DNA from: Guillardia theta CCMP2712
Lineage: Eukaryota; Protista; Cryptophyta
Assembly (NCBI RefSeq): GCF_000315625.1
Contig: NW_005434550.1
Location: 109,391-173,390 of the forward strand
Direction: 5' to 3'
Length of the DNA: 64,000 bases
The translations under genes and the position numbers were made by a program. Below, one piece after another: positions 3,917 through 30,600 of the stretch; the first letter of the stretch is position 1, and each line of letters begins with the position of its first letter. The notes under the pieces were generated by a model. The model had not been told where the DNA came from, made no database searches, and saw only the letters and a list, made by a program, of their open reading frames with translations.

Positions 3917-5212
3917 ATGCTGGTCGGGCGATTCCGCATGGCGATGGCCATGTGCCTGCTGTGTCCGCAGGGAGCAGGAGGAGCGACGACTCTCCTGCCC
4001 TCCACCGCTCGAGCCCTCGCTCGAGGAGCCGTGCTCCGCATCACAGCCGATCTGACAGGCGGGCTTCCTCTCGACCACTGGAAGGTGTGCAGAAGGGAGG
4101 GAGTGAAGTGAAGGTCTGACGAGTAGGCAGACGAGGAGCATCCGGCACCCCGAGGAGTCTGCGCTACAGGCTCTCAAGGCTGTCTACCAGCAGCAGGGGG
4201 GGCTCGGAGCTTACTGGGCGGGTCTGCCCGCGAAGCTTATCGAGGGATCGCTGTGTGGGGCCGCGCTCATGGCGACTAAGGAGGGGATGAGGGCAGCGCT
4301 GGTGCAAGCTCGAGTGCCGCTAGCCGAGTCGGCTATAGGAGGGATCGCAGGGATAGCAGGAGGAATCGGATCATGTCTCGTCCTCGCTCCCACCACCATG
4401 CTCGTCCTCACGACTGCCACGACTGGGAAGCCGGCGCTGACGACTCTGAGGGACGTTGCGGAGGGGAAGCGAAACTTCCTTGAGCTGTACACGGGAGGAG
4501 GATCTCTTGCTCTACGAGAAGCAACGAACTGGTTCGAGAGGGGAGGGGAGGAGGAAGAGGAAGATGAGAGACTGTCACAGGGCATCGCGTGAGGGTCTGA
4601 CCGGACTAGCGAGAAACTGGTTGAAGAGGTCCCCTCCTGCACTGCGCCTTCTCCCCGAGCATCTCCCCTCCTCCTTCCTCCTCCTCCCTCCTCCTCCCTC
4701 CACGAACGATGCTGTTCAGCATCACTTTTCTCACATCCCCCGTAGACAAGGTGTAGGCAAAGGAGCAGCGCTGGAGATAGGAAGCGGGGTGATTGGAGGT
4801 GTACTAGCATGCTGGAATCATCCGTTTGAGGTCTTACTCTGCCTTCTCCTCCCCCTCTTTCCTCCCTTTCCTCCTACTCCTCCCTTCCCGTACTTTCGCT
4901 GTTCTTTCCTCCCACTCTTCCTCCGGCATTTTTCCTCCTCGCTCGTCTCTTTCCTCCTCCGCTCCCTTCTCCTCCTCCCTCCCTCCTCACCTCCTCGGCC
5001 TCGGGCATGACGGGTCGCAGATCGCGAGGATCCGGCAGCAGAGAGATCAGGTGCTGCTAGGAGGGAGCAAGGAGAGCACGCTGGATACGATGAGGAAGGT
5101 GGTGGAGAAGGAGGGGCCGCACGGCCTCTACGTCGGTCTCGTCCCTCGCTGCGCCCTGTCGGCATGGCTGACAAGCTTCATGGTTGTCGCTCCCCGGCTC
5201 TTGTTCAAGTGA
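3917..5212 (+). CDS. Mitochondrial carrier family protein, YHM2-like (citrate/oxoglutarate type), multi-exon
   Basis: Carrier signature PLDHWK|TR spans an intron. Other motifs: AYWAGLPAKLIEG, LREATNW, GGVLACWNHPFEV and GLYVGLVPRCALSAWLTSFMVV. Confidence 0.8.
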
Positions 5213-5221
5213 ATGGAGTCA

Positions 5222-5288
5222 AGAGGAGGAGGAGGAGGAGGAGGAGGAGGAGGAGGAGGAGGAGGAGGAGGAGGAGGAGGAGGAGGAG
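5222..5288. repeat. (GAG)n microsatellite
   Basis: Perfect GAG run directly after the carrier stop codon. Confidence 0.95.
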
Positions 5289-5688
5289 ACGGGGGGAGGG
5301 GAGCTGGAGGAACGGGAGGAAGGAAAGAGGCACGAGAAATGGTGGAACAGAGAGGGGAGTCCAGGAAGGAGTTCACATGTGGATGATGAGAGGAAGGGAG
5401 CTTGAGCAATGCAGTGAGACGCGGGGAGAAGAAAGGGAGAGTGCAACACAAGATGATGAGGGATAATGGAAGGCGGTGGACGAATAAGAGGGGAGGGGAG
5501 GGGAACGTGTAAGGGAGGAGGAGGAGGAGGGAAGGAGGAGGAGGAGGAGGGGTTTGTTATAGCTTCACGTACAGTAATAGAATGACAGCATAGCTTCCAA
5601 TGCTCCTCACTGACTAGGGACACAGACCCTCAGACCCTCCGAAGAGGAGGAGGAGGGGGAGGAGGTGGAGAAGTAGAAGAGAGAAAGT

Positions 5689-8600
5689 TTATCTTCCTGA
5701 AGTCCCGTCCTTGTTGCCTCCGAACGCAGCTGACTTGGGCGTCTTGCTCCATGTCTTGTCGAAGCCCTGAGAGTTGATCAGCGAGGAGGGAGGGAGAGAG
5801 AGGGGAAGAGAGAGACGGAGCAGGAGTAGGAGAGGAAAGGAGAGGAGAGGAGAGGAAGGAGCAGGAGGAGACCTTGTAAGATGATCCAACAACAGTCTTG
5901 AGGTAGTCGCCGTTCTTCTCGTTGTGCTTCCATGGAATAGCCTTTCCTCCGATGTCCACAACCTGATCATGGGTCACTCCTCCTCCTCCTCTGCTGTCAT
6001 GCTCCTACCTCACGATCGTAGCTAGGCTTGTGCGTGTAGACCTCGGCAGGAACCTGAGAAATGAATAAGAACAACCGTTCCTCTAGTCCTCCCTCCCGTT
6101 CTATACTCTTTTTCCTCCTCCTCTTCTCATGGAACCACCCCAACCCCTGCCCCCCCCCCCTCCATGCTCTACTCTCCTCCCTCTGTCCTCTCCTCCCTCT
6201 TCACCGTGGAGTGCACGTATGCGTTGGCCTTCTTGGTGTAGTCGGTGTAGGGCTTGATGATCTTGGTGACATGGTCGCCAATCTCCTCCTTCCAATCCGC
6301 AGCATCGTAGACCCTCCACTTCTTGTTCTTGTTCTTGGACAGCCATTTCTGCAGAGGAATTAGAGAAAAGAGGAGGAGGAAAGAATGGAGCCTTTCAGAG
6401 CACTCGGCAGTAGAGAAAGTGAGGAGGGAGGGACGAGGAGAAACAAGAATGGAAGAAGAAAGTAGAGGAGGTAGCGAGTGGGGAGGAGGAGGGAGGAAGC
6501 AGCGGCACCTTGTCGTAGTCGAAGAAGGGATTCTTTTCCCTGTACTTGTTCGCATCGCCGAGGTCCACCGAGTCGCCGTTGGACAGCTGGACGCCCTTGA
6601 GGGATCCGAGGCCGATGATGCCCGTCTGAGGGGATCGAGGTGAGAAAATCACGGGAGGGGGAGGGGGAGGAAAAAAGGAGGACACGTCGAGGGCAACAGC
6701 ATCGGAAGGGGTGAGGAAGGGAAGAAAGCGAGGAGGGGAAGGAGGAGGTATGAGTCAGGATGAGGCAAGAGGAAGCAGTCGAGAAGAGAAGGATTACCTC
6801 ATGATATCCCTCCACGAGCTTGAACGTGTCGTCGGAGCCGGTATCAGGTCCAGCATACTGCAGCACGAGGACCTGGTGGCCCCAGTAGCGTCCTGAAGGA
6901 GCTGATGAGAAGAAGAAGGTGGGAAAGAGGAGGGGAGGAAGAGAGGAAGTCGAAGATACTTCTTACCCATCTTCACGACGGATTCCGGAAGGATCTGATA
7001 GTACGCGAGAGTGTTCTCGTTGGCCAGAGGAGCTCCGTTGTAACTGAGGGACTGCTCGATGGAAGGGATGTCAATGGACTTCGCCAGCTTCTCCTTGAGG
7101 TCGTAGACGGTGGTGGAGCTCGGGAGCTTGAACTTGATCTTGTCACCCTTGGAAGTCTTCACGTAGAACGTCAGCGTGTCGCCACCCTGCATTGCTCCTA
7201 TCATGTTGTCGTCGCCAGTCTCTTGCGGGAAGGTCGTCAGGTTTTCCTCCCATGTCGGGTTGGTGACGTAGTCGTCGTCGGTGCCGTCCTGCCTCCACAT
7301 CAACCTGACCCCATGCCACCTGGTCCGACCAGTCAGAGACTACCCCCATGGCTCAGAGAGTTTTCCTACCCCTTGTCCAAGTAGATCTGCGCTCTCTTTT
7401 CGTGGGGATGAAGAAAGCCTCCCTCAGCTGCTCAACGTCAGTCAAGTCACATCTAGAGGGCCAGCAGCAGCACCGTCAGCTGAACCGTCGGCGTCGGCGT
7501 TCTCAATGATCAAGTCGTCGTCGATCTCCAGCTGGAAGGTGGGGATCAGATCGAGCGACTGAGCTGAGAAGCGTTACCGATGAGCCGTCGTCACTGGTCA
7601 GAGCGAACTCGTAGACTCCTCCCTCCTCGATCTTGATCATGCCCTCCGCCATCAGCACAACCTGCCGCGTGGCCTTCAGCACACCCACAAACATCCTGTG
7701 AGTGACTTGACTCACCATCTTCCTGGGGAAGTTCTCGTCTTGCAGAGCCTCCACCCACTCATCGTGGTTGCGGTAGTCAAAAGTGGCCAACCTAGTCAGA
7801 CGTCAGAACGCTCTCCGCCCTTTAGTTGTCTCACCTCGCCGCCGAGTTGGGAGGGTTGAAGAGGGACCGATTCTGGATATCGGAGAGGGAAGGAACAGAA
7901 ACGTCGGTATCACTGAAGTAGGCGAAGCTGACGAGGATGGTAGAGGAGGGCTGAATGTAGTAATCCTTCAAGGTTCTACCGTCAGCTAGGACTATTCCCT
8001 GATACATCAGCTTCTGCTGTGCGGTAGCGATGTTGCTCTGCTCTGCCACCTTCTCACGCAACGTCTCGATGGTGTCTGAGCCGTCCAGGTCGACAGCGAA
8101 AGTCTTGCCAGTGATGGTTTGGACGTACAACTTCATCGGTCCATCTGGGCCAAAGTCACAACAAAATGTTCGCAGCTACTGCTGGTTACCGGGAGTTGGG
8201 GTAGATGAGGAGCTGTAGCCACCTTGGGGAGCCATGTAGTAGAACAGGCAGCCGAATCCTGGCTGCACGTTTCTCTTGGCTTCGACCTTGCCCTTGGCAT
8301 CGAGGTCGAGAGCGAAGTGATATCCCATTACATTCCCTTCCTCTCCTCCTGTGTCTGGACCAGTGTACACAACTTGAACAAATGAGTTGCCCTCATCCGG
8401 CTTAAAACGAAAACTTTTAGCCCCAGGCAACCAAACATCAAGATCAACATCACCTGCGGCGCTTTCCAGATGAAAGTGACCTTGTGGTATCCACTCTCCA
8501 GTGTGATAGGATCAGTGGACTCAGGCCCGCCATTAGGTGCGACGATGATCTGAAACATGTCAAGAAAACAATTCAAAGCATCATGATGACCTGTTTGTTG

Positions 8601-9360
8601 TCAACGAACAAAACGCAGGGGGATGTTGCTGAAAGGTTGAATGTGTAGTCGCCCTTCTTCACCACTTCCATTCTATCAAAAAGGTTTCAGCGTCTAAGAA
8701 AGCAAAGGATAAGTTTCTTCTTGCTACCTCCCATGAAAGATCGCAACGAACTTGGAGTAATCCGCTGTGTTGTTAGCAGGAAGCGAAGGCCCCGCACTCT
8801 CAGCAATGTCTGCATAGTTTCCAAAGTGCAACGCAGTCTTGAAGGTTTGAGCATCAGGAAGTCCCAGCATAGTCTTCAAGTCGATGAGCTTTCCGGTCAT
8901 GTCACTGAAAGAGACGTCTTTCTGCCAGTACATCTTAACTTCGAAGCCTGTTGGGATGTTACTACAACTTGCAATGCAAACAAACGATCAAGATTCACCA
9001 GGCTCGGAGTACATGGTGTGCAGCAAGCCACTCGAGTCATCGTAATTCTCGATTGCACCGAGTTTCTGTGTAGCTGATTTCAACATCTTTCGTGCAGCAA
9101 TCATCTTTTGTGCCGCGCTGGTGTAGATTCTTGCCGCCTTGTCAGTGCGTGAAAGGGCGACCACTCCCACCAAAGCAAGACAAGCTGCAAGCATAGACGA
9201 GTACAATGCCTGACAAGGGCGTCAACAGGCATCGCAAGAGACGTTGCAACGCTACCCTTCGTTTGTTCTTGGAGTTGCGATCATTGAGAAACTGACTTCT
9301 GGAGGCAACAGCTCCGTAGTTGCCATCCGTCACGTTGACCTCGAACACCTCCGACCCGTT
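5689..9360 (-). CDS. Type-II membrane protein with two PA14-like domains, two inserted ubiquitin-like domains and a conserved unknown C-terminal region (start lies further upstream, uncertain)
   Basis: TM helix MLAACLALVGVVALS. PA14-1: FVAIFHGRIEVVKKGDYTF...ITLESGYHKVTFIW...VVYTGPDT. PA14-2: EGMIKIEEGGVYEFALTSDDGS...IYLDKGWHGVRLMWRQ...VLVLQYAGPDT. Ubl-1 at ~7918-8136 (MKLYVQTITGKTF...LADGRTLKDYYIQ) and Ubl-2 at ~6967-7174. Checked junctions splice in frame. Confidence 0.8.
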
Positions 9361-9989
9361 CTAGTCAAGATAACGTCAGTAAAGGCCAATCGCATGGCTC
9401 AAACGCATTGCAGCAAGCTCATGATGTGGATGGATATTCGAGTATTTGGCTTCCGACAACCTTGGGCAGTGAAGAGCAAGAGCAGAGGCAGCAGAGGAGG
9501 AGACTATCAATAAGGAGGACGAAGAAGCCGGGACGAAGAATACAATCACGATGCTGGTGGTGACGATGATGAGGTGGTGGTGGTGGATGTCAATCAGGCT
9601 CGCACGAGCATTGAAGCGCGACAAGAGCGCATTTTGATCCTCACCATGATCGACGAGGGTTCTATTTCGGGAGCAGCCCCAGAGACCCATATATAGCTTG
9701 GCCTAGGACCGGGTGATATCTCACCCCGTAGCAATCCTTGTAGAGCCGAATAATAACTAAAACATGGAGTACGGGGAATACAAAAAAAAACAATCAAAAT
9801 TTGACAAGGTGCTCAACAACACCCTACTACCTACCCCTCTCACCCGTATTATTGGCTGGGTTGAAATAAACTTTCGAGGACTTGCCTGATTGTTTTAGAT
9901 GCATGCGGATGACATCGATCGTCTCTTAGCAGGTGGTCCAAGATCCAGAGGAAACAAACATTTGAAAAGACGGATGTTCATATCAAAAT

Positions 9990-27639: not shown

Positions 27640-30600
27640 CCTCAGCAGCCCCTTCAATCAGACCTATCTATTCGCATCTCCAACTCTGCCATGACTAGTC
27701 GCAGCTCGCATGTGCTCTTGATCACTCTTGTCTTGCCAGATGGAGGCACCTCTGCCAAAAGAATTCGCCCCTTGGTCGCTGTGGGATCGACGGTCCTGGC
27801 GATCTTGTTGGTTTCCCTGCTGATCGCCACGAGTGCGGTCAGTGTGCATTTTCAACTCCATCGCTTCATTCACATGGGATTCATGACAGCCGTCCGAGAG
27901 AGATAGCAAATCTCTTGCTGTGAAGATGGTATCAAGTACGACTGAGGTCTGCACCTCTCCCACCCGTTCTCGTGATCTCTAACGAGCAAGTTGCCCTTCT
28001 TCTTGGCAGTCTTTGAAGCAGAAGATGTTAGCGCTCAGGCAGATGCTAGAGAACGCCTACGTGGAGTATAACTCTCAGAGCGGCCTGTTGGTCACTCGTC
28101 ACTTCGACGATGGATTCAAACTGCTTGTGTGAGTGCGGAGGGAGTTGAGAGCCTCCGAGGGTAGTTGACTGCCGTCAAAGGTGGTGGAATGCCGACGTTC
28201 GTTACGACCAGAAGAACCTCGTGAAGCTGTTCAAGCCGGAGGCGGAAGGGACGACCAAGTACATCAACTTTGTCAACTACTCCTCCATCCAGGAGAAGCT
28301 GCTGAAGGGCGACACCTTCCCACCCGAGGGATCCGACGACGTGAGATCCTCATTCTGCTTGCTCCTGCCTGACGCACGTGCAAGCTCGATGACCTCGTGG
28401 TCCTCATGGTCGGCCAAGTCAAAGTCCCTGCAGACGGTGACTACACGATCTTCCTCAACACAACTGGAGGGGCGGTGATCAACGTGACCGACTCTAAGAC
28501 GGGAGCTAGCGTGGTGGGACCTGCCGACGTCTGTCGTCTTGCTCCGCCTGTGATGATGTGCGTGTACAGGAGCTCTCTGGAGTTTCTGAAGGAGTTGAGA
28601 GCGGTGAGCTTGCAATCAGAAGCTGCCGGTGGCCTGATCGCGTGCCCAGGTGTTGTCACCCTCTCTGAAGGGATGGCGACCGTGGTTGCCTTCTGGCATC
28701 CTAGCGCTGATGGTGAGCGACGAGTGCAGGAGGAGAAGGACGAGGTGGAGGATGGGGACTCCTGACCCTCTGCATGCAGGTGCAGGTGTGAGCGTTCCGC
28801 GGCTGATCGTCACTTGGAATGGAACAGGGACAGGAGGAGAGGTGAGAAGAGGAGCAGAGCAAGTTGGGGATGCAGAAGGGAGAGCTGGGAAGTGTAGGTG
28901 AAGGTGGGACGGAATTGTGGACGGACAGAGGCAGCTGCTTTGGAGCATTGTGAGGCTCTTGGCAGGTACCTCTTGTCGGGCGCCACTGGACGGACGGAAA
29001 GTCCACCAAGCCCAAGGGCGAAAGTACGGGAGGAGTGAAGGAGGAGGAGAATCTGACTTGGAGGGGTCAGTTCCAGACGGGAAGGTGCAGCATGGCTGGG
29101 GTTGCCGTTTCATATGCTACGAGGAGTGAGTGAGGGAAGGAGGGAGGAGAGGATGGTGACCTGCTCCTTGTCTCTCAGTCCCATCGTTGAGCTCCCGCCG
29201 GCCCACCAGCTGCTGAACGAAACTCCCTGCGCAGCCGTCAGGTCCTGCTCCTTATCATCGGGACGGGAGGGGGGTAGATGAAAGTTCCTAGGGGGATGGG
29301 AGAAGGGTGGATGACGGGGGTGGATGAAGGTTTGACCCCTCTGTCCAGGTTGGACACAATCAACATCTCGAGCCACGACGAGCTGTGGTCAATCGTCCGC
29401 GAAGAGGTGAAGATCAGCTGGGGGCTGGTAGGGCAAGGCAATGACGTCATTGCAGGGCGAGGAAGACTTTCTCAGCTACCACGTTGCTGCTGTCTGTCAG
29501 GGTCTAGTCAAGACCGAGGTTGTCAAAGTTCTCCTCTTCACTACGCTTGCTGACCTTGACCTTTCCCAGCATGCCGGTCGCTATCAGTTTGACGTGGCCA
29601 GCGACGACGGCGCCAGCCTGATTATCGATGACATCCTGGTTGTCAAATGTTTGACAACCTCCGCCCTCCAGAGCTCACGAGGGTGCAGGTGCTGAATGAG
29701 ACGGGGGAGGTTGACCCCTTCGTCGTGACCAGCGCGCTTGTCAAACTCCCGGCGGGCTACCACGAAGTGACTTTGACCTGGTTTCAAAACTCAGGTCTGT
29801 CTCAGCTGGACTGGGAGGGCGTGCGGGGCTGAAAGTCTTGACAGTGCAAGGGCCAACACAGGCTGGGACTGCCAACTCCCGCTATGAGAAGCAGACAGGG
29901 GGGCAGGTGGGAAGAAGCAGGAAGGAGGGAAGCGAGGAGAAGCTAGAGGAGGAGGGAGAGGAGGAAGAGGAAGAGGGAGAGAGAGCGAGGGAGGAGGAGG
30001 AGGAGGTTCTGATCCTCTGCTAGGTGCTCGTGCTCCTCTACCGTGGGCCAGACAACCACTACAACGTCAATCTCTCTGACCCCATGGGCCCCGAACTCTC
30101 GTCTGGAGGAAGAATCGTGCTGATTCCTCCTCCCCAGAACCCTGCACAGATCACTTACTCAGGTATGAATCCTCCTCCTCCTCCTCCTCCTCTTCCTCCT
30201 CTTCCTCCTCTTCCTCCTCCTCCTCCTCCTCCTCCTCCTCGTCTCCTCGACCCCTTCCTCGTCCACAGTCACCACCGCTTCCTCCAACACCACTACCACC
30301 ACACACTCTCTCATCTTCTCACCTCTCCCTCCTCCTCCTCGTCTCCCCTCCCTTCTCGCTCGTTGATGTCGCATGTAGGGAACGGACCTCTCATCTGGAG
30401 CCCGGCCGCCTCTGACTACTCCCTTCTTACTCAAGGGTCTGCTCAGCCCCCGCCTCCCCCTCCCTCCCCCTCTCTGACTCGTTGCAGATTTTTCCTCCCC
30501 GGCGGCTTCGGCGACATCAAGGGGTTGAAACTTACGGGAGGAAGAACCGTACATGTAAAGAGAGTGTGGGAACATGGCAGGACACTGACGATGCCGACTC

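Follow-up and report, generated by a model that had tools for sequence, protein, structure and literature searches.

We analyzed a 64,000-nucleotide (nt) stretch of the Guillardia theta CCMP2712 genome (assembly GCA_000315625.1, scaffold JH993088.1), here called the window, and focused on a minus-strand gene that encodes PA14 domains and ubiquitin-like (Ubl) domains. At least 17 exons are joined by mRNA into one protein-coding gene of 770 amino acids (aa). Two nonconjugatable ubiquitin-family domains are inserted in loops of one PA14 domain of the protein, PA14-2, and both are absent from a paralog of the gene. This architecture, a PA14 host with two nested ubiquitin-family guests, is supported by transcript contigs, Pfam matches, a PDB profile search, and an internal-repeat alignment, and we are highly confident of it. 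The same evidence bears out the original prediction, made for this DNA before our analysis, that two Ubl domains lie within one PA14 domain. The gene span given in that prediction (6840-8290) proved too small, because the coding sequence runs from 9194 to 5689 and also includes an upstream PA14 domain (PA14-1) and, downstream, a basic C-terminal region of 157 aa. Our best explanation of the gene joins this architecture to a secretory location and a lectin/Ubl role; for the whole, we estimate a probability of roughly 0.55.

When read in six frames, the minus strand of the locus shows short coding pieces that change frame from one to the next, which is the appearance of a eukaryotic gene with very small introns. 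We mapped transcript contigs of three public runs (X1, X2, and X3) onto positions 4000-9700 of the window and listed 15 joints. The skipped part at every joint reads CT..AC on the plus strand, equivalent to GT..AG on the gene strand. The lengths skipped in the contigs are 46, 151, 160, 172, 74, 50, 46, 46, 54, 43, 45, 53, 41, and 55 nt, and a skip of 106 nt is seen in pieces of X3 record 12. With the exons joined, the open reading frame (ORF) is uninterrupted for 770 codons, from the ATG at 9194 to the stop codon at 5689-5691. The coding region and its introns, in positions of the window, are as follows.

5689-9194, minus strand: whole coding region, 17 exons, 770 aa, with the ATG at 9194-9192 and the stop codon at 5691-5689
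5767-5872, 5963-6008, 6054-6204, 6349-6508, and 6626-6797, minus strand: introns with spliced joints in transcript contigs
6893-6966, 7320-7369, 7428-7473, 7532-7577, and 7662-7715, minus strand: introns with spliced joints in transcript contigs
7792-7834, 8145-8189, 8401-8453, 8550-8590, and 8673-8727, minus strand: introns with spliced joints in transcript contigs
8948-8998, minus strand: intron known from prediction, without read support

The junctions on which the prediction depended are present in transcripts as GT-AG joints, and the locus is not split. In a single 812-nt contig (X1 record 2; pieces 6988-7317, 7368-7427, 7474-7531, 7578-7659, 7714-7789, and 7833-8038), four small PA14-2 exons are spliced in one molecule to the Ubl-2 exon on one side and to the Ubl-1 exon on the other, with all five introns within the middle part of PA14-2 removed. 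The 45-nt in-frame intron proposed ahead of Ubl-1 (8145-8189, TPTP|DGPMKLYVQ) is spliced at joint 8144/8190 in runs X1 and X3. After Ubl-2, a joint in X1 and X2 identifies the 74-nt version of the intron (6893-6966), which leads to ..VVKM|GRYWGHQ. Three introns had alternative lengths (45 or 78 nt, 46 or 58 nt, and 65 or 74 nt), and the reads fixed them at 45, 46, and 74 nt. The 54-nt intron 7662-7715 is in frame, free of stop codons, and encodes the plausible-looking peptide VSQVTHRMFVGVLKATRQ, which had initially been taken as protein. The transcript contigs reject this intron as coding; it is spliced out, and VSQVTHRMFVGVLKATRQ lies outside the protein. Joints are supported down to position 5765, and the last 40 nt before the stop codon are without read support.

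At the 5' end of the gene, the match between an X1 contig and the genome breaks off at 9208, adjacent to an acceptor-like cag (9210-9212), and no stop codon interrupts the frame between that point and the ATG; an additional 5' exon is therefore likely. A candidate exon has an ATG at 9326 and a donor, GTCAGT, at 9296, with positions 9297-9326 encoding MATTELLPPE. We rejected an X1 contig that starts from 9568 as the 5' exon, since its loose end (GGAGGAG..) mismatches the exon at 9209. The transcribed piece at 9568-9700, found in X1 and X2, possibly comes from a plus-strand exon (ORF 9574-9696) unrelated to the gene studied here. In run X2, introns 6626-6797 (partly) and 7428-7473 are kept in contigs 6731-6891 and 7365-7558, respectively, and another X2 contig is spliced at 6891/6966. 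The unspliced X2 pieces represent either some intron retention or DNA carry-over in the library.

From the N-terminus to the C-terminus, the predicted layout of the protein is as follows.

9150-9194, minus strand: N-terminal hydrophobic segment MLAACLALVGVVALS (aa 1-15), a possible signal peptide or short anchor; Kyte-Doolittle analysis shows no other hydrophobic peak in the protein
9045-9149, minus strand: basic segment (aa 16-50) with 8 K/R versus 2 D/E, conserved with the paralog (..QKM[IL]A.R.ML..)
8308-9032, minus strand: PA14-1 (aa 55-229), uninterrupted; 13.7 bits for Pfam PA14 on its core exon and z = 5.9 against PA14-2
8233-8268, minus strand: first strand of PA14-2, VQPGFGCLFYYM (aa 243-254), which aligns with FEVKMYW in PA14-1 and WGCRFICY in the paralog
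8137-8232, minus strand: linker 1 (aa 255-271), rich in Ser, Thr, Pro, and Gly, including the 45-nt intron 8145-8189
7921-8136, minus strand: Ubl-1 (aa 272-343), from Pfam PF00240 (70.4 bits, E 1.1e-19) and alignment to ubiquitin
7283-7920, minus strand: middle part of PA14-2 (aa 344-476), from Pfam PA14 (23.0 bits on a 28-aa exon) and the PDB profile search
7178-7282, minus strand: linker 2 (aa 477-511), acidic, without K or R, with an NLT sequon; predicted local distance difference test (pLDDT) score <50 when folded in isolation
6968-7177, minus strand: Ubl-2 (aa 512-581), from Pfam PF00240 (57.8 bits), an AlphaFold2 model (pLDDT >90), and Foldseek
6798-6967, minus strand: last strands of PA14-2, GRYWGHQVLVLQYAGPDTG..EGYHE (VLVLQYAGPDTG..EGYHE; aa 582-613), including the 74-nt intron 6893-6966
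5692-6625, minus strand: C-terminal basic region (aa 614-770, 157 aa), common to the paralog at SKNKNKKWRVYD, IIKPYTDYTKKA, and VVDIGGKAIPWK; without a Pfam match

Both Ubl domains pass the curated PF00240 cutoff of 25.4 bits on their exact exons (Ubl-2 with E 9e-16), in agreement with their original assignment. On longer stretches, the Pfam ubiquitin profile gives E 1.5e-19 in 7834-8175 and E 1.7e-15 in 6797-7339. In pairwise alignments, identity to ubiquitin is 43% for Ubl-1 and 33% for Ubl-2, and the two domains are 36% identical to each other. As had been predicted, neither ends in Gly-Gly: the C-termini read ..STILVSFAYF (Ubl-1) and ..ESVVKMGRYW (Ubl-2), and both run on into PA14 strands. 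Because they have no Gly-Gly tail, Ubl-1 and Ubl-2 are, judged by sequence, built-in domains rather than modifiers. At the positions that form the Ile44 patch of ubiquitin (L8, I44, H68, and V70), the alignment places I8, M44, L68, and S70 in Ubl-1 and S8, S44, V68, and M70 in Ubl-2; hydrophobic residues are thus kept at positions 8, 44, and 68 of Ubl-1, and Ser occupies positions 8 and 44 of Ubl-2. Lys48 and Lys63 are replaced by Ile and Pro in Ubl-1 and by Ala and Pro in Ubl-2. A search of Ubl-1 for the N-terminal Ubl header of Crinkler effectors (PF20147) gave E 0.13 and 13.5 bits, below the cutoff of 24.6 bits.

We used AlphaFold2 to model the Ubl-2 exon alone, with a ubiquitin-like input alignment. 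The pLDDT was >90 over exon aa 48-117 and <50 over the preceding 45 residues, which comprise a PA14 strand and the acidic linker. Foldseek matched the Ubl-2 model to ubiquitin, ISG15, and NEDD8 with target TM-scores of 0.85-0.90. The model predicts a beta-grasp fold for Ubl-2, in a test that is partly circular owing to the ubiquitin-like input alignment. The linkers also suit such a fold. Those on the N-terminal side are long (17 aa for Ubl-1 and 35 aa for Ubl-2) and those on the C-terminal side are almost nil, with the last strand of Ubl-1 passing directly into the PA14 motif YFSD. This is the arrangement that a beta-grasp guest would need, because the first and last strands of the fold end at opposite poles.

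For the host domain, we compared single exons with the Pfam PA14 profile (PF07691), which has a cutoff of 24 bits. The core exon of PA14-2 scored 23.0 bits, that of PA14-1 scored 13.7 bits, and the core ORFs of the paralog scored 12.4 and 17.6 bits. The core exons of all four PA14 units in the two genes match profile positions 43-85. A profile built from these four core segments (37 positions) and searched against the PDB had 6qdi_A, a "PA14 domain-containing protein," as its top match (E 1.2e-6); below it ranked MpPA14 entries (including 5j6y), a GH3 beta-glucosidase, and a Lap adhesin. Judged from these profile matches, the PA14 core motif in PA14-2 is genuine. The middle part of PA14-2 extends from the tail of the Ubl-1 exon through four complete exons into the first bases of the Ubl-2 exon, and it carries GVYEFALTSDDGSS (G-x-Y-x-F..TSDDGSS, 7578-7661) together with the strand GWHGVRLMWRQDG. 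The DDG motif that had been reported for PA14-2 is kept, as TSDDGSS. The metal motif of PA14-1 is degenerate, with SATSPC where PA14 normally has SDDG.

The two insertion points are visible in alignments of repeats. Against shuffles, the alignment of PA14-1 with PA14-2 after excision of the Ubl domains reaches z 5.9, and a three-way MAFFT alignment of PA14-1, PA14-2, and the PA14-2 of the paralog has two clean gaps exactly at the Ubl domains. The first gap lies between ..LFYY and YFSD, so Ubl-1 follows just after the first PA14-2 strand, as had been proposed; the same positions in PA14-1 read ..KMYWQKDVSFSD, a tight turn. The second gap lies between ..MWRQDG and ..HQVLVLQY, which agrees with the placement of Ubl-2 between GWHGVRLMWRQ and VLVLQYAGPDT in the original prediction. 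At this place, PA14-1 has a loop of about 10 aa and the paralog has one of 12 aa. The last strands of PA14-2, after the second gap, align with VQVVYTGPDTGGEE..GYH in PA14-1 and with VLVLLYRGPD in the paralog. From these alignments, we infer that aa 243-254, 344-476, and 582-613 fold as one PA14 domain that hosts two Ubl domains.

The paralog provides a third copy of the host domain in which the insertion sites can be read. Its N-terminal part is as follows.

27692-30137, plus strand: N-terminal part of the paralog, a predicted GT-AG model, in frame and without read support, with two PA14 units and no Ubl domain

At the two Ubl sites, the paralog has 223 nt and 203 nt of intron-like, GT..AG-bounded DNA with stop codons in its frames, and there is therefore no room for a Ubl domain. 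The predicted PA14-2 of the paralog is 171 aa long, close to the 147-position Pfam PA14 model, and has short loops at both sites, as had been claimed. The introns of the gene studied here fall at or within a few codons of these paralog sites (those of 45 nt, ahead of Ubl-1, and 74 nt, following Ubl-2), and the 53-nt intron of PA14-1 lies at an equivalent spot. This suggests that the guests were acquired at intron positions of the family. The gene thus offers a natural case of double domain nesting in which the insertion points can be read from an uninterrupted twin domain and a paralog 20 kb away, and with both points at places where the family has introns, it is a useful example of guest-domain acquisition. 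The paralog also appears to hold an in-frame intron of 51 nt (29519-29569), similar to the 54-nt intron described above. When comparing the paralogous loci, we found that tblastx was swamped by low-complexity translations of introns (Pro, Ser, Gly, and Glu) and that tblastn with the spliced protein worked better.

One environmental relative allowed us to estimate constraint. A metagenome contig in ENA, ERZ930064 (L002, 1735 nt), is 96.5% identical to the window over positions 8432-6704. Exons differ from this contig at 27 of 1245 positions (2.2%; 16 synonymous and 11 nonsynonymous differences), and introns differ at 34 of 484 positions (7.0%) and contain all the indels. The ratio of nonsynonymous to synonymous substitution rates (dN/dS) is roughly 0.2. 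In a search of 1.84 billion cluster representatives with the Ubl-2 exon flank, only P0001 and P0002 among the matches listed had this flank, and the other 148 were polyubiquitin-like. P0001 is an unspliced ORF from the ERZ930064 contig, and P0002 is the GenBank model of the locus. A word search returned P0001 and P0002 alone and no full-length protein, a scan of JGI metagenomes for relatives gave 199 pattern matches, none of which was confirmed, and we found no literature on a Ubl domain inserted in a PA14 domain or on the locus tag. As far as these sequence collections indicate, the layout of a PA14 host with two Ubl guests is found nowhere else and is known from one lineage.

We next consider where the protein may reside. 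Its N-terminus has a single hydrophobic core of 13-14 residues with small residues at positions -3/-1 (VVA|LS, ALS|RT). The N-terminus of the paralog (27692-27840, plus strand) has about 26 residues including KRIR, then a 23-residue hydrophobic stretch, PLVAVGSTVLAILLVSLLIATSA, and resembles a signal anchor more than a cleavable signal. The first predicted intron of the paralog, after GFKLL, would be only 25-31 nt long, and this junction is unsure. We consider the protein probably extracytosolic or luminal, because the core has the length of a signal peptide, the residues at -3/-1 are small, the N-terminus of the paralog is anchor-like, and PA14 domains usually occur outside the cytosol. A cytosolic, N-terminally tethered protein seems distinctly less probable, and a periplastid one improbable. 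The original interpretation, which had Ubl domains displayed by a lectin-like protein outside the cell or in the lumen, thus stands for its architecture (contigs, Pfam, PDB profile, and alignments), and its location remains a suggestion from a 14-residue N-terminal stretch and the anchor-like N-terminus of the paralog. Display at the surface and the role of the Ubl domains as decoys for pathogen ubiquitin effectors, both raised in that interpretation, are conjectural. For the location and function part of our explanation taken separately, we see the chances as evenly balanced.

Under this explanation, insertions would have arisen in this lineage where the family carries introns, and the hydrophobic N-terminus would take the protein into the secretory pathway. 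There, PA14-2 would act as a lectin-like module, and the two Ubl domains would act as protein-binding handles or lids adjoining the sugar site. Lectins of the PA14/Flo5 type bind Ca2+ and the sugar through two calcium-binding loops: CBL1 contributes a DcisD motif, and CBL2, immediately past strand 12, supplies an Asn and the residues that follow it (PMC6218569). The DD pair of CBL1 is present in PA14-2 (TSDDGSS) and absent from PA14-1 (SATSPC). By resemblance, TSDDGSS may be the CBL1 motif, and the loop after ..VRLMWRQDG, with the acidic linker and Ubl-2, may be CBL2, beside the ligand pocket. The loop taken as CBL2 starts with ..MWRQDGTDDD and accommodates Ubl-2. We tentatively suggest, as a possibility with the odds somewhat against it, a lectin in which a ubiquitin fold has taken the place of the sugar-binding loop, with two Ubl domains displayed on a Ca2+-type PA14 scaffold in the lumen or at the cell surface. 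If this is true, then glycan binding would be physically coupled to Ubl-mediated protein recognition, in a rare extracytosolic use of true ubiquitin-family (PF00240) domains as built-in recognition modules. An extracytosolic PA14 domain would by itself place true ubiquitin-family domains in a compartment without ubiquitin machinery, beside a lectin pocket, and would widen the known use of Ubl domains. If the protein is instead cytosolic or periplastid, then the oddity shifts to the PA14 domain.

Several known systems share part of this arrangement. Integral (type 2) UBLs occur nested in host domains, e.g., in the catalytic domain of USP-family deubiquitinases. These inserts likewise have a ubiquitin fold without Gly-Gly in a loop of a host domain; however, the USP hosts are cytosolic enzymes of the ubiquitin system, whereas the host here is a lectin-type beta-sandwich behind a hydrophobic N-terminus. 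Nested architectures that involve PA14 are also found in GH3 beta-glucosidases (PDB 4i3g, among our PDB matches), in which PA14 is the insert rather than the host. The N-terminal Ubl header of Crinkler effectors and secreted ISG15 offer examples of ubiquitin-like folds on exported proteins, as may be the case here. ISG15, however, is a free two-Ubl protein that can be conjugated and has no signal peptide for its secretion, and neither its Ubl domains nor that of Crinklers are nested in a lectin domain. PA14 lectins (yeast Flo5, Epa1, and Cea1; Marinomonas MpPA14; PDB 6qdi) have the same G-x-Y-x-F ... S-D-D-G core and the same Ca2+-binding DD pair in CBL1 as PA14-2, and the loops around their pocket can be elaborated, as in the L2 subdomain of Flo5 (PMC6218569). 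The guests here differ in being two complete ubiquitin-family domains of ~70 aa rather than loop extensions, one of them at the presumed CBL2. The protein also differs from these lectins in having an N-terminal twin, PA14-1, without the DD motif, and its own glycan binding is putative.

A number of observations weigh against our explanation. For the host domain, the 28-aa core exon of PA14-2 scores just below the Pfam cutoff, PDB profile searches with the segments before and after the Ubl-2 site (A3 and A2) returned nothing significant, the reading of aa 243-254, 344-476, and 582-613 as one beta-sandwich comes from single-exon scores and alignments, and the placement of Ubl-2 in CBL2 is an analogy of motifs, not a structural alignment. 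For the topology, there is no positive charge before the hydrophobic stretch and there are 8 K/R versus 2 D/E in the 35 aa after it, the mature protein has two cysteines only, and the 5' end is incomplete, given that the X1 contig leaves the genome at 9208. Expression is low, with contig depths of 3-7 and 2 raw reads in about 6% of one RNA run. In the ERZ930064 contig, a G>T change at window position 7528 turns codon 427 into TAG. Finally, we found no ortholog from another genus in the collections searched, which is weak evidence given the uncertain coverage of cryptophyte transcriptomes.

The alternative that survives best has the same architecture and the opposite topology. The N-terminus would be a P450-like reverse signal anchor (N out, C in), the PA14 and Ubl domains would be cytosolic and membrane-tethered, and the Ubl domains would serve as integral UBL domains of the usual kind, with proteasome, UBA, or UIM partners. 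The distribution of charge around the hydrophobic core is the pattern of a protein with its C-terminal side in the cytosol, and the paucity of cysteines, the hydrophobic residues at Ile44-patch positions of Ubl-1, and the normally cytosolic location of Pfam-type ubiquitin domains all fit this topology. However, the core is of signal-peptide length and short for a membrane span, the small residues at -3/-1 fit cleavage, and PA14 domains are almost always extracellular. The basic segment, moreover, is conserved right after the anchor of the paralog and may be structural. Weighing both sides, we think a reverse anchor unlikely and favor a secretory protein.

The basic segment also bears on targeting to the periplastid compartment of the cryptophyte complex plastid, for which a signal peptide would be followed by a transit-peptide-like basic stretch without Phe at +1. 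The stretch of 35 aa after the hydrophobic segment is rich in Ala, Ser, Thr, Lys, and Arg, is almost free of acidic residues, and does not begin with an aromatic residue. The periplastid compartment has its own ubiquitin and endoplasmic-reticulum-associated degradation-derived machinery (SELMA) and stores starch. Periplastid targeting and ubiquitin-dependent import are subjects of published work (e.g., PMC3045029 and PMC12136025). The basic stretch is, however, homologous to a segment of the paralog that stands behind a long anchor-like segment and contains acidic residues; it is therefore more likely to belong to the mature protein, as a conserved part, than to be a transit peptide. We therefore regard periplastid targeting as quite improbable.

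Equally improbable, in our assessment, is that the insertions are recent, near-neutral accidents in a weakly expressed, lineage-specific paralog that is heading for decay, with Ubl domains that have no function in themselves. Such a history would account for a design known from one species and one near-identical environmental contig, for the in-frame TAG at codon 427 and the 11 nonsynonymous changes among 27 in that contig, for the loss of the Ile44 patch in Ubl-2, and for the low expression of the gene. Against decay, dN/dS is near 0.2 by a rough estimate, sequence divergence is three times as high in introns as in exons, indels are confined to introns, and both Ubl domains have kept full-length, Pfam-significant cores. 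The TAG itself may reflect error, rescue, or decay; read in the sequence, the G>T change that produces it also yields a new acceptor, ..ctgtag, 6 nt downstream, through which the frame would be maintained. A second G>T change lies 12 nt away in the same contig (D431Y).

The locus is mis-annotated in GenBank as a 152-aa "partial" di-ubiquitin-like protein (EKX35567.1/XP_005822547.1, GUITHDRAFT_47044; P0002 above). This model covers window positions 6966-8134 on the minus strand and splices Ubl-1 directly to Ubl-2, treating the PA14-2 core as an intron; PA14-1 and the downstream C-terminal exons are unannotated in the gene table. Its residues are identical to those of Ubl-1 and Ubl-2 in our protein, from which it differs in the removal of the PA14-2 core and the lack of PA14-1 and the C-terminal region, and the transcript contigs contradict it. 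Among the joints listed in the three runs, none is of the GenBank Ubl-1/Ubl-2 type. It is very improbable that the GenBank product is real, as a small two-Ubl protein made by Ubl-1/Ubl-2 splicing with PA14-containing transcripts as minor or unproductive isoforms, because, despite the existence of the model and a low read depth at which rare isoforms would escape, the joint that skips about 725 nt is absent from the listing and the small introns between the Ubl domains are all spliced in one contig, and the model carries a partial label, lacks a start context, and passes over in-frame PA14 exons under purifying selection. Gene predictors apparently extracted two ubiquitin-like pieces and dropped the host domain. 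Our analysis corrects the public model from a "partial" 152-aa hypothetical protein to a 770-aa multidomain protein.

The mapped region contains features that are separate from this gene. We rejected joint 4857/5977 (1119 nt skipped, depth up to 380, side 20) as a low-complexity artifact from an abundant unrelated transcript. Purine-rich, twenty-letter low-complexity stretches at 4837-4857 and 5977-5998 draw contigs of depth up to 380. A neighboring annotated gene at about 3936-5210 on the plus strand (L001:8925-10199) encodes a mitochondrial carrier (PF00153), and long (CCT)n/(GAG)n runs at 5215-5301 separate it from the gene studied here.

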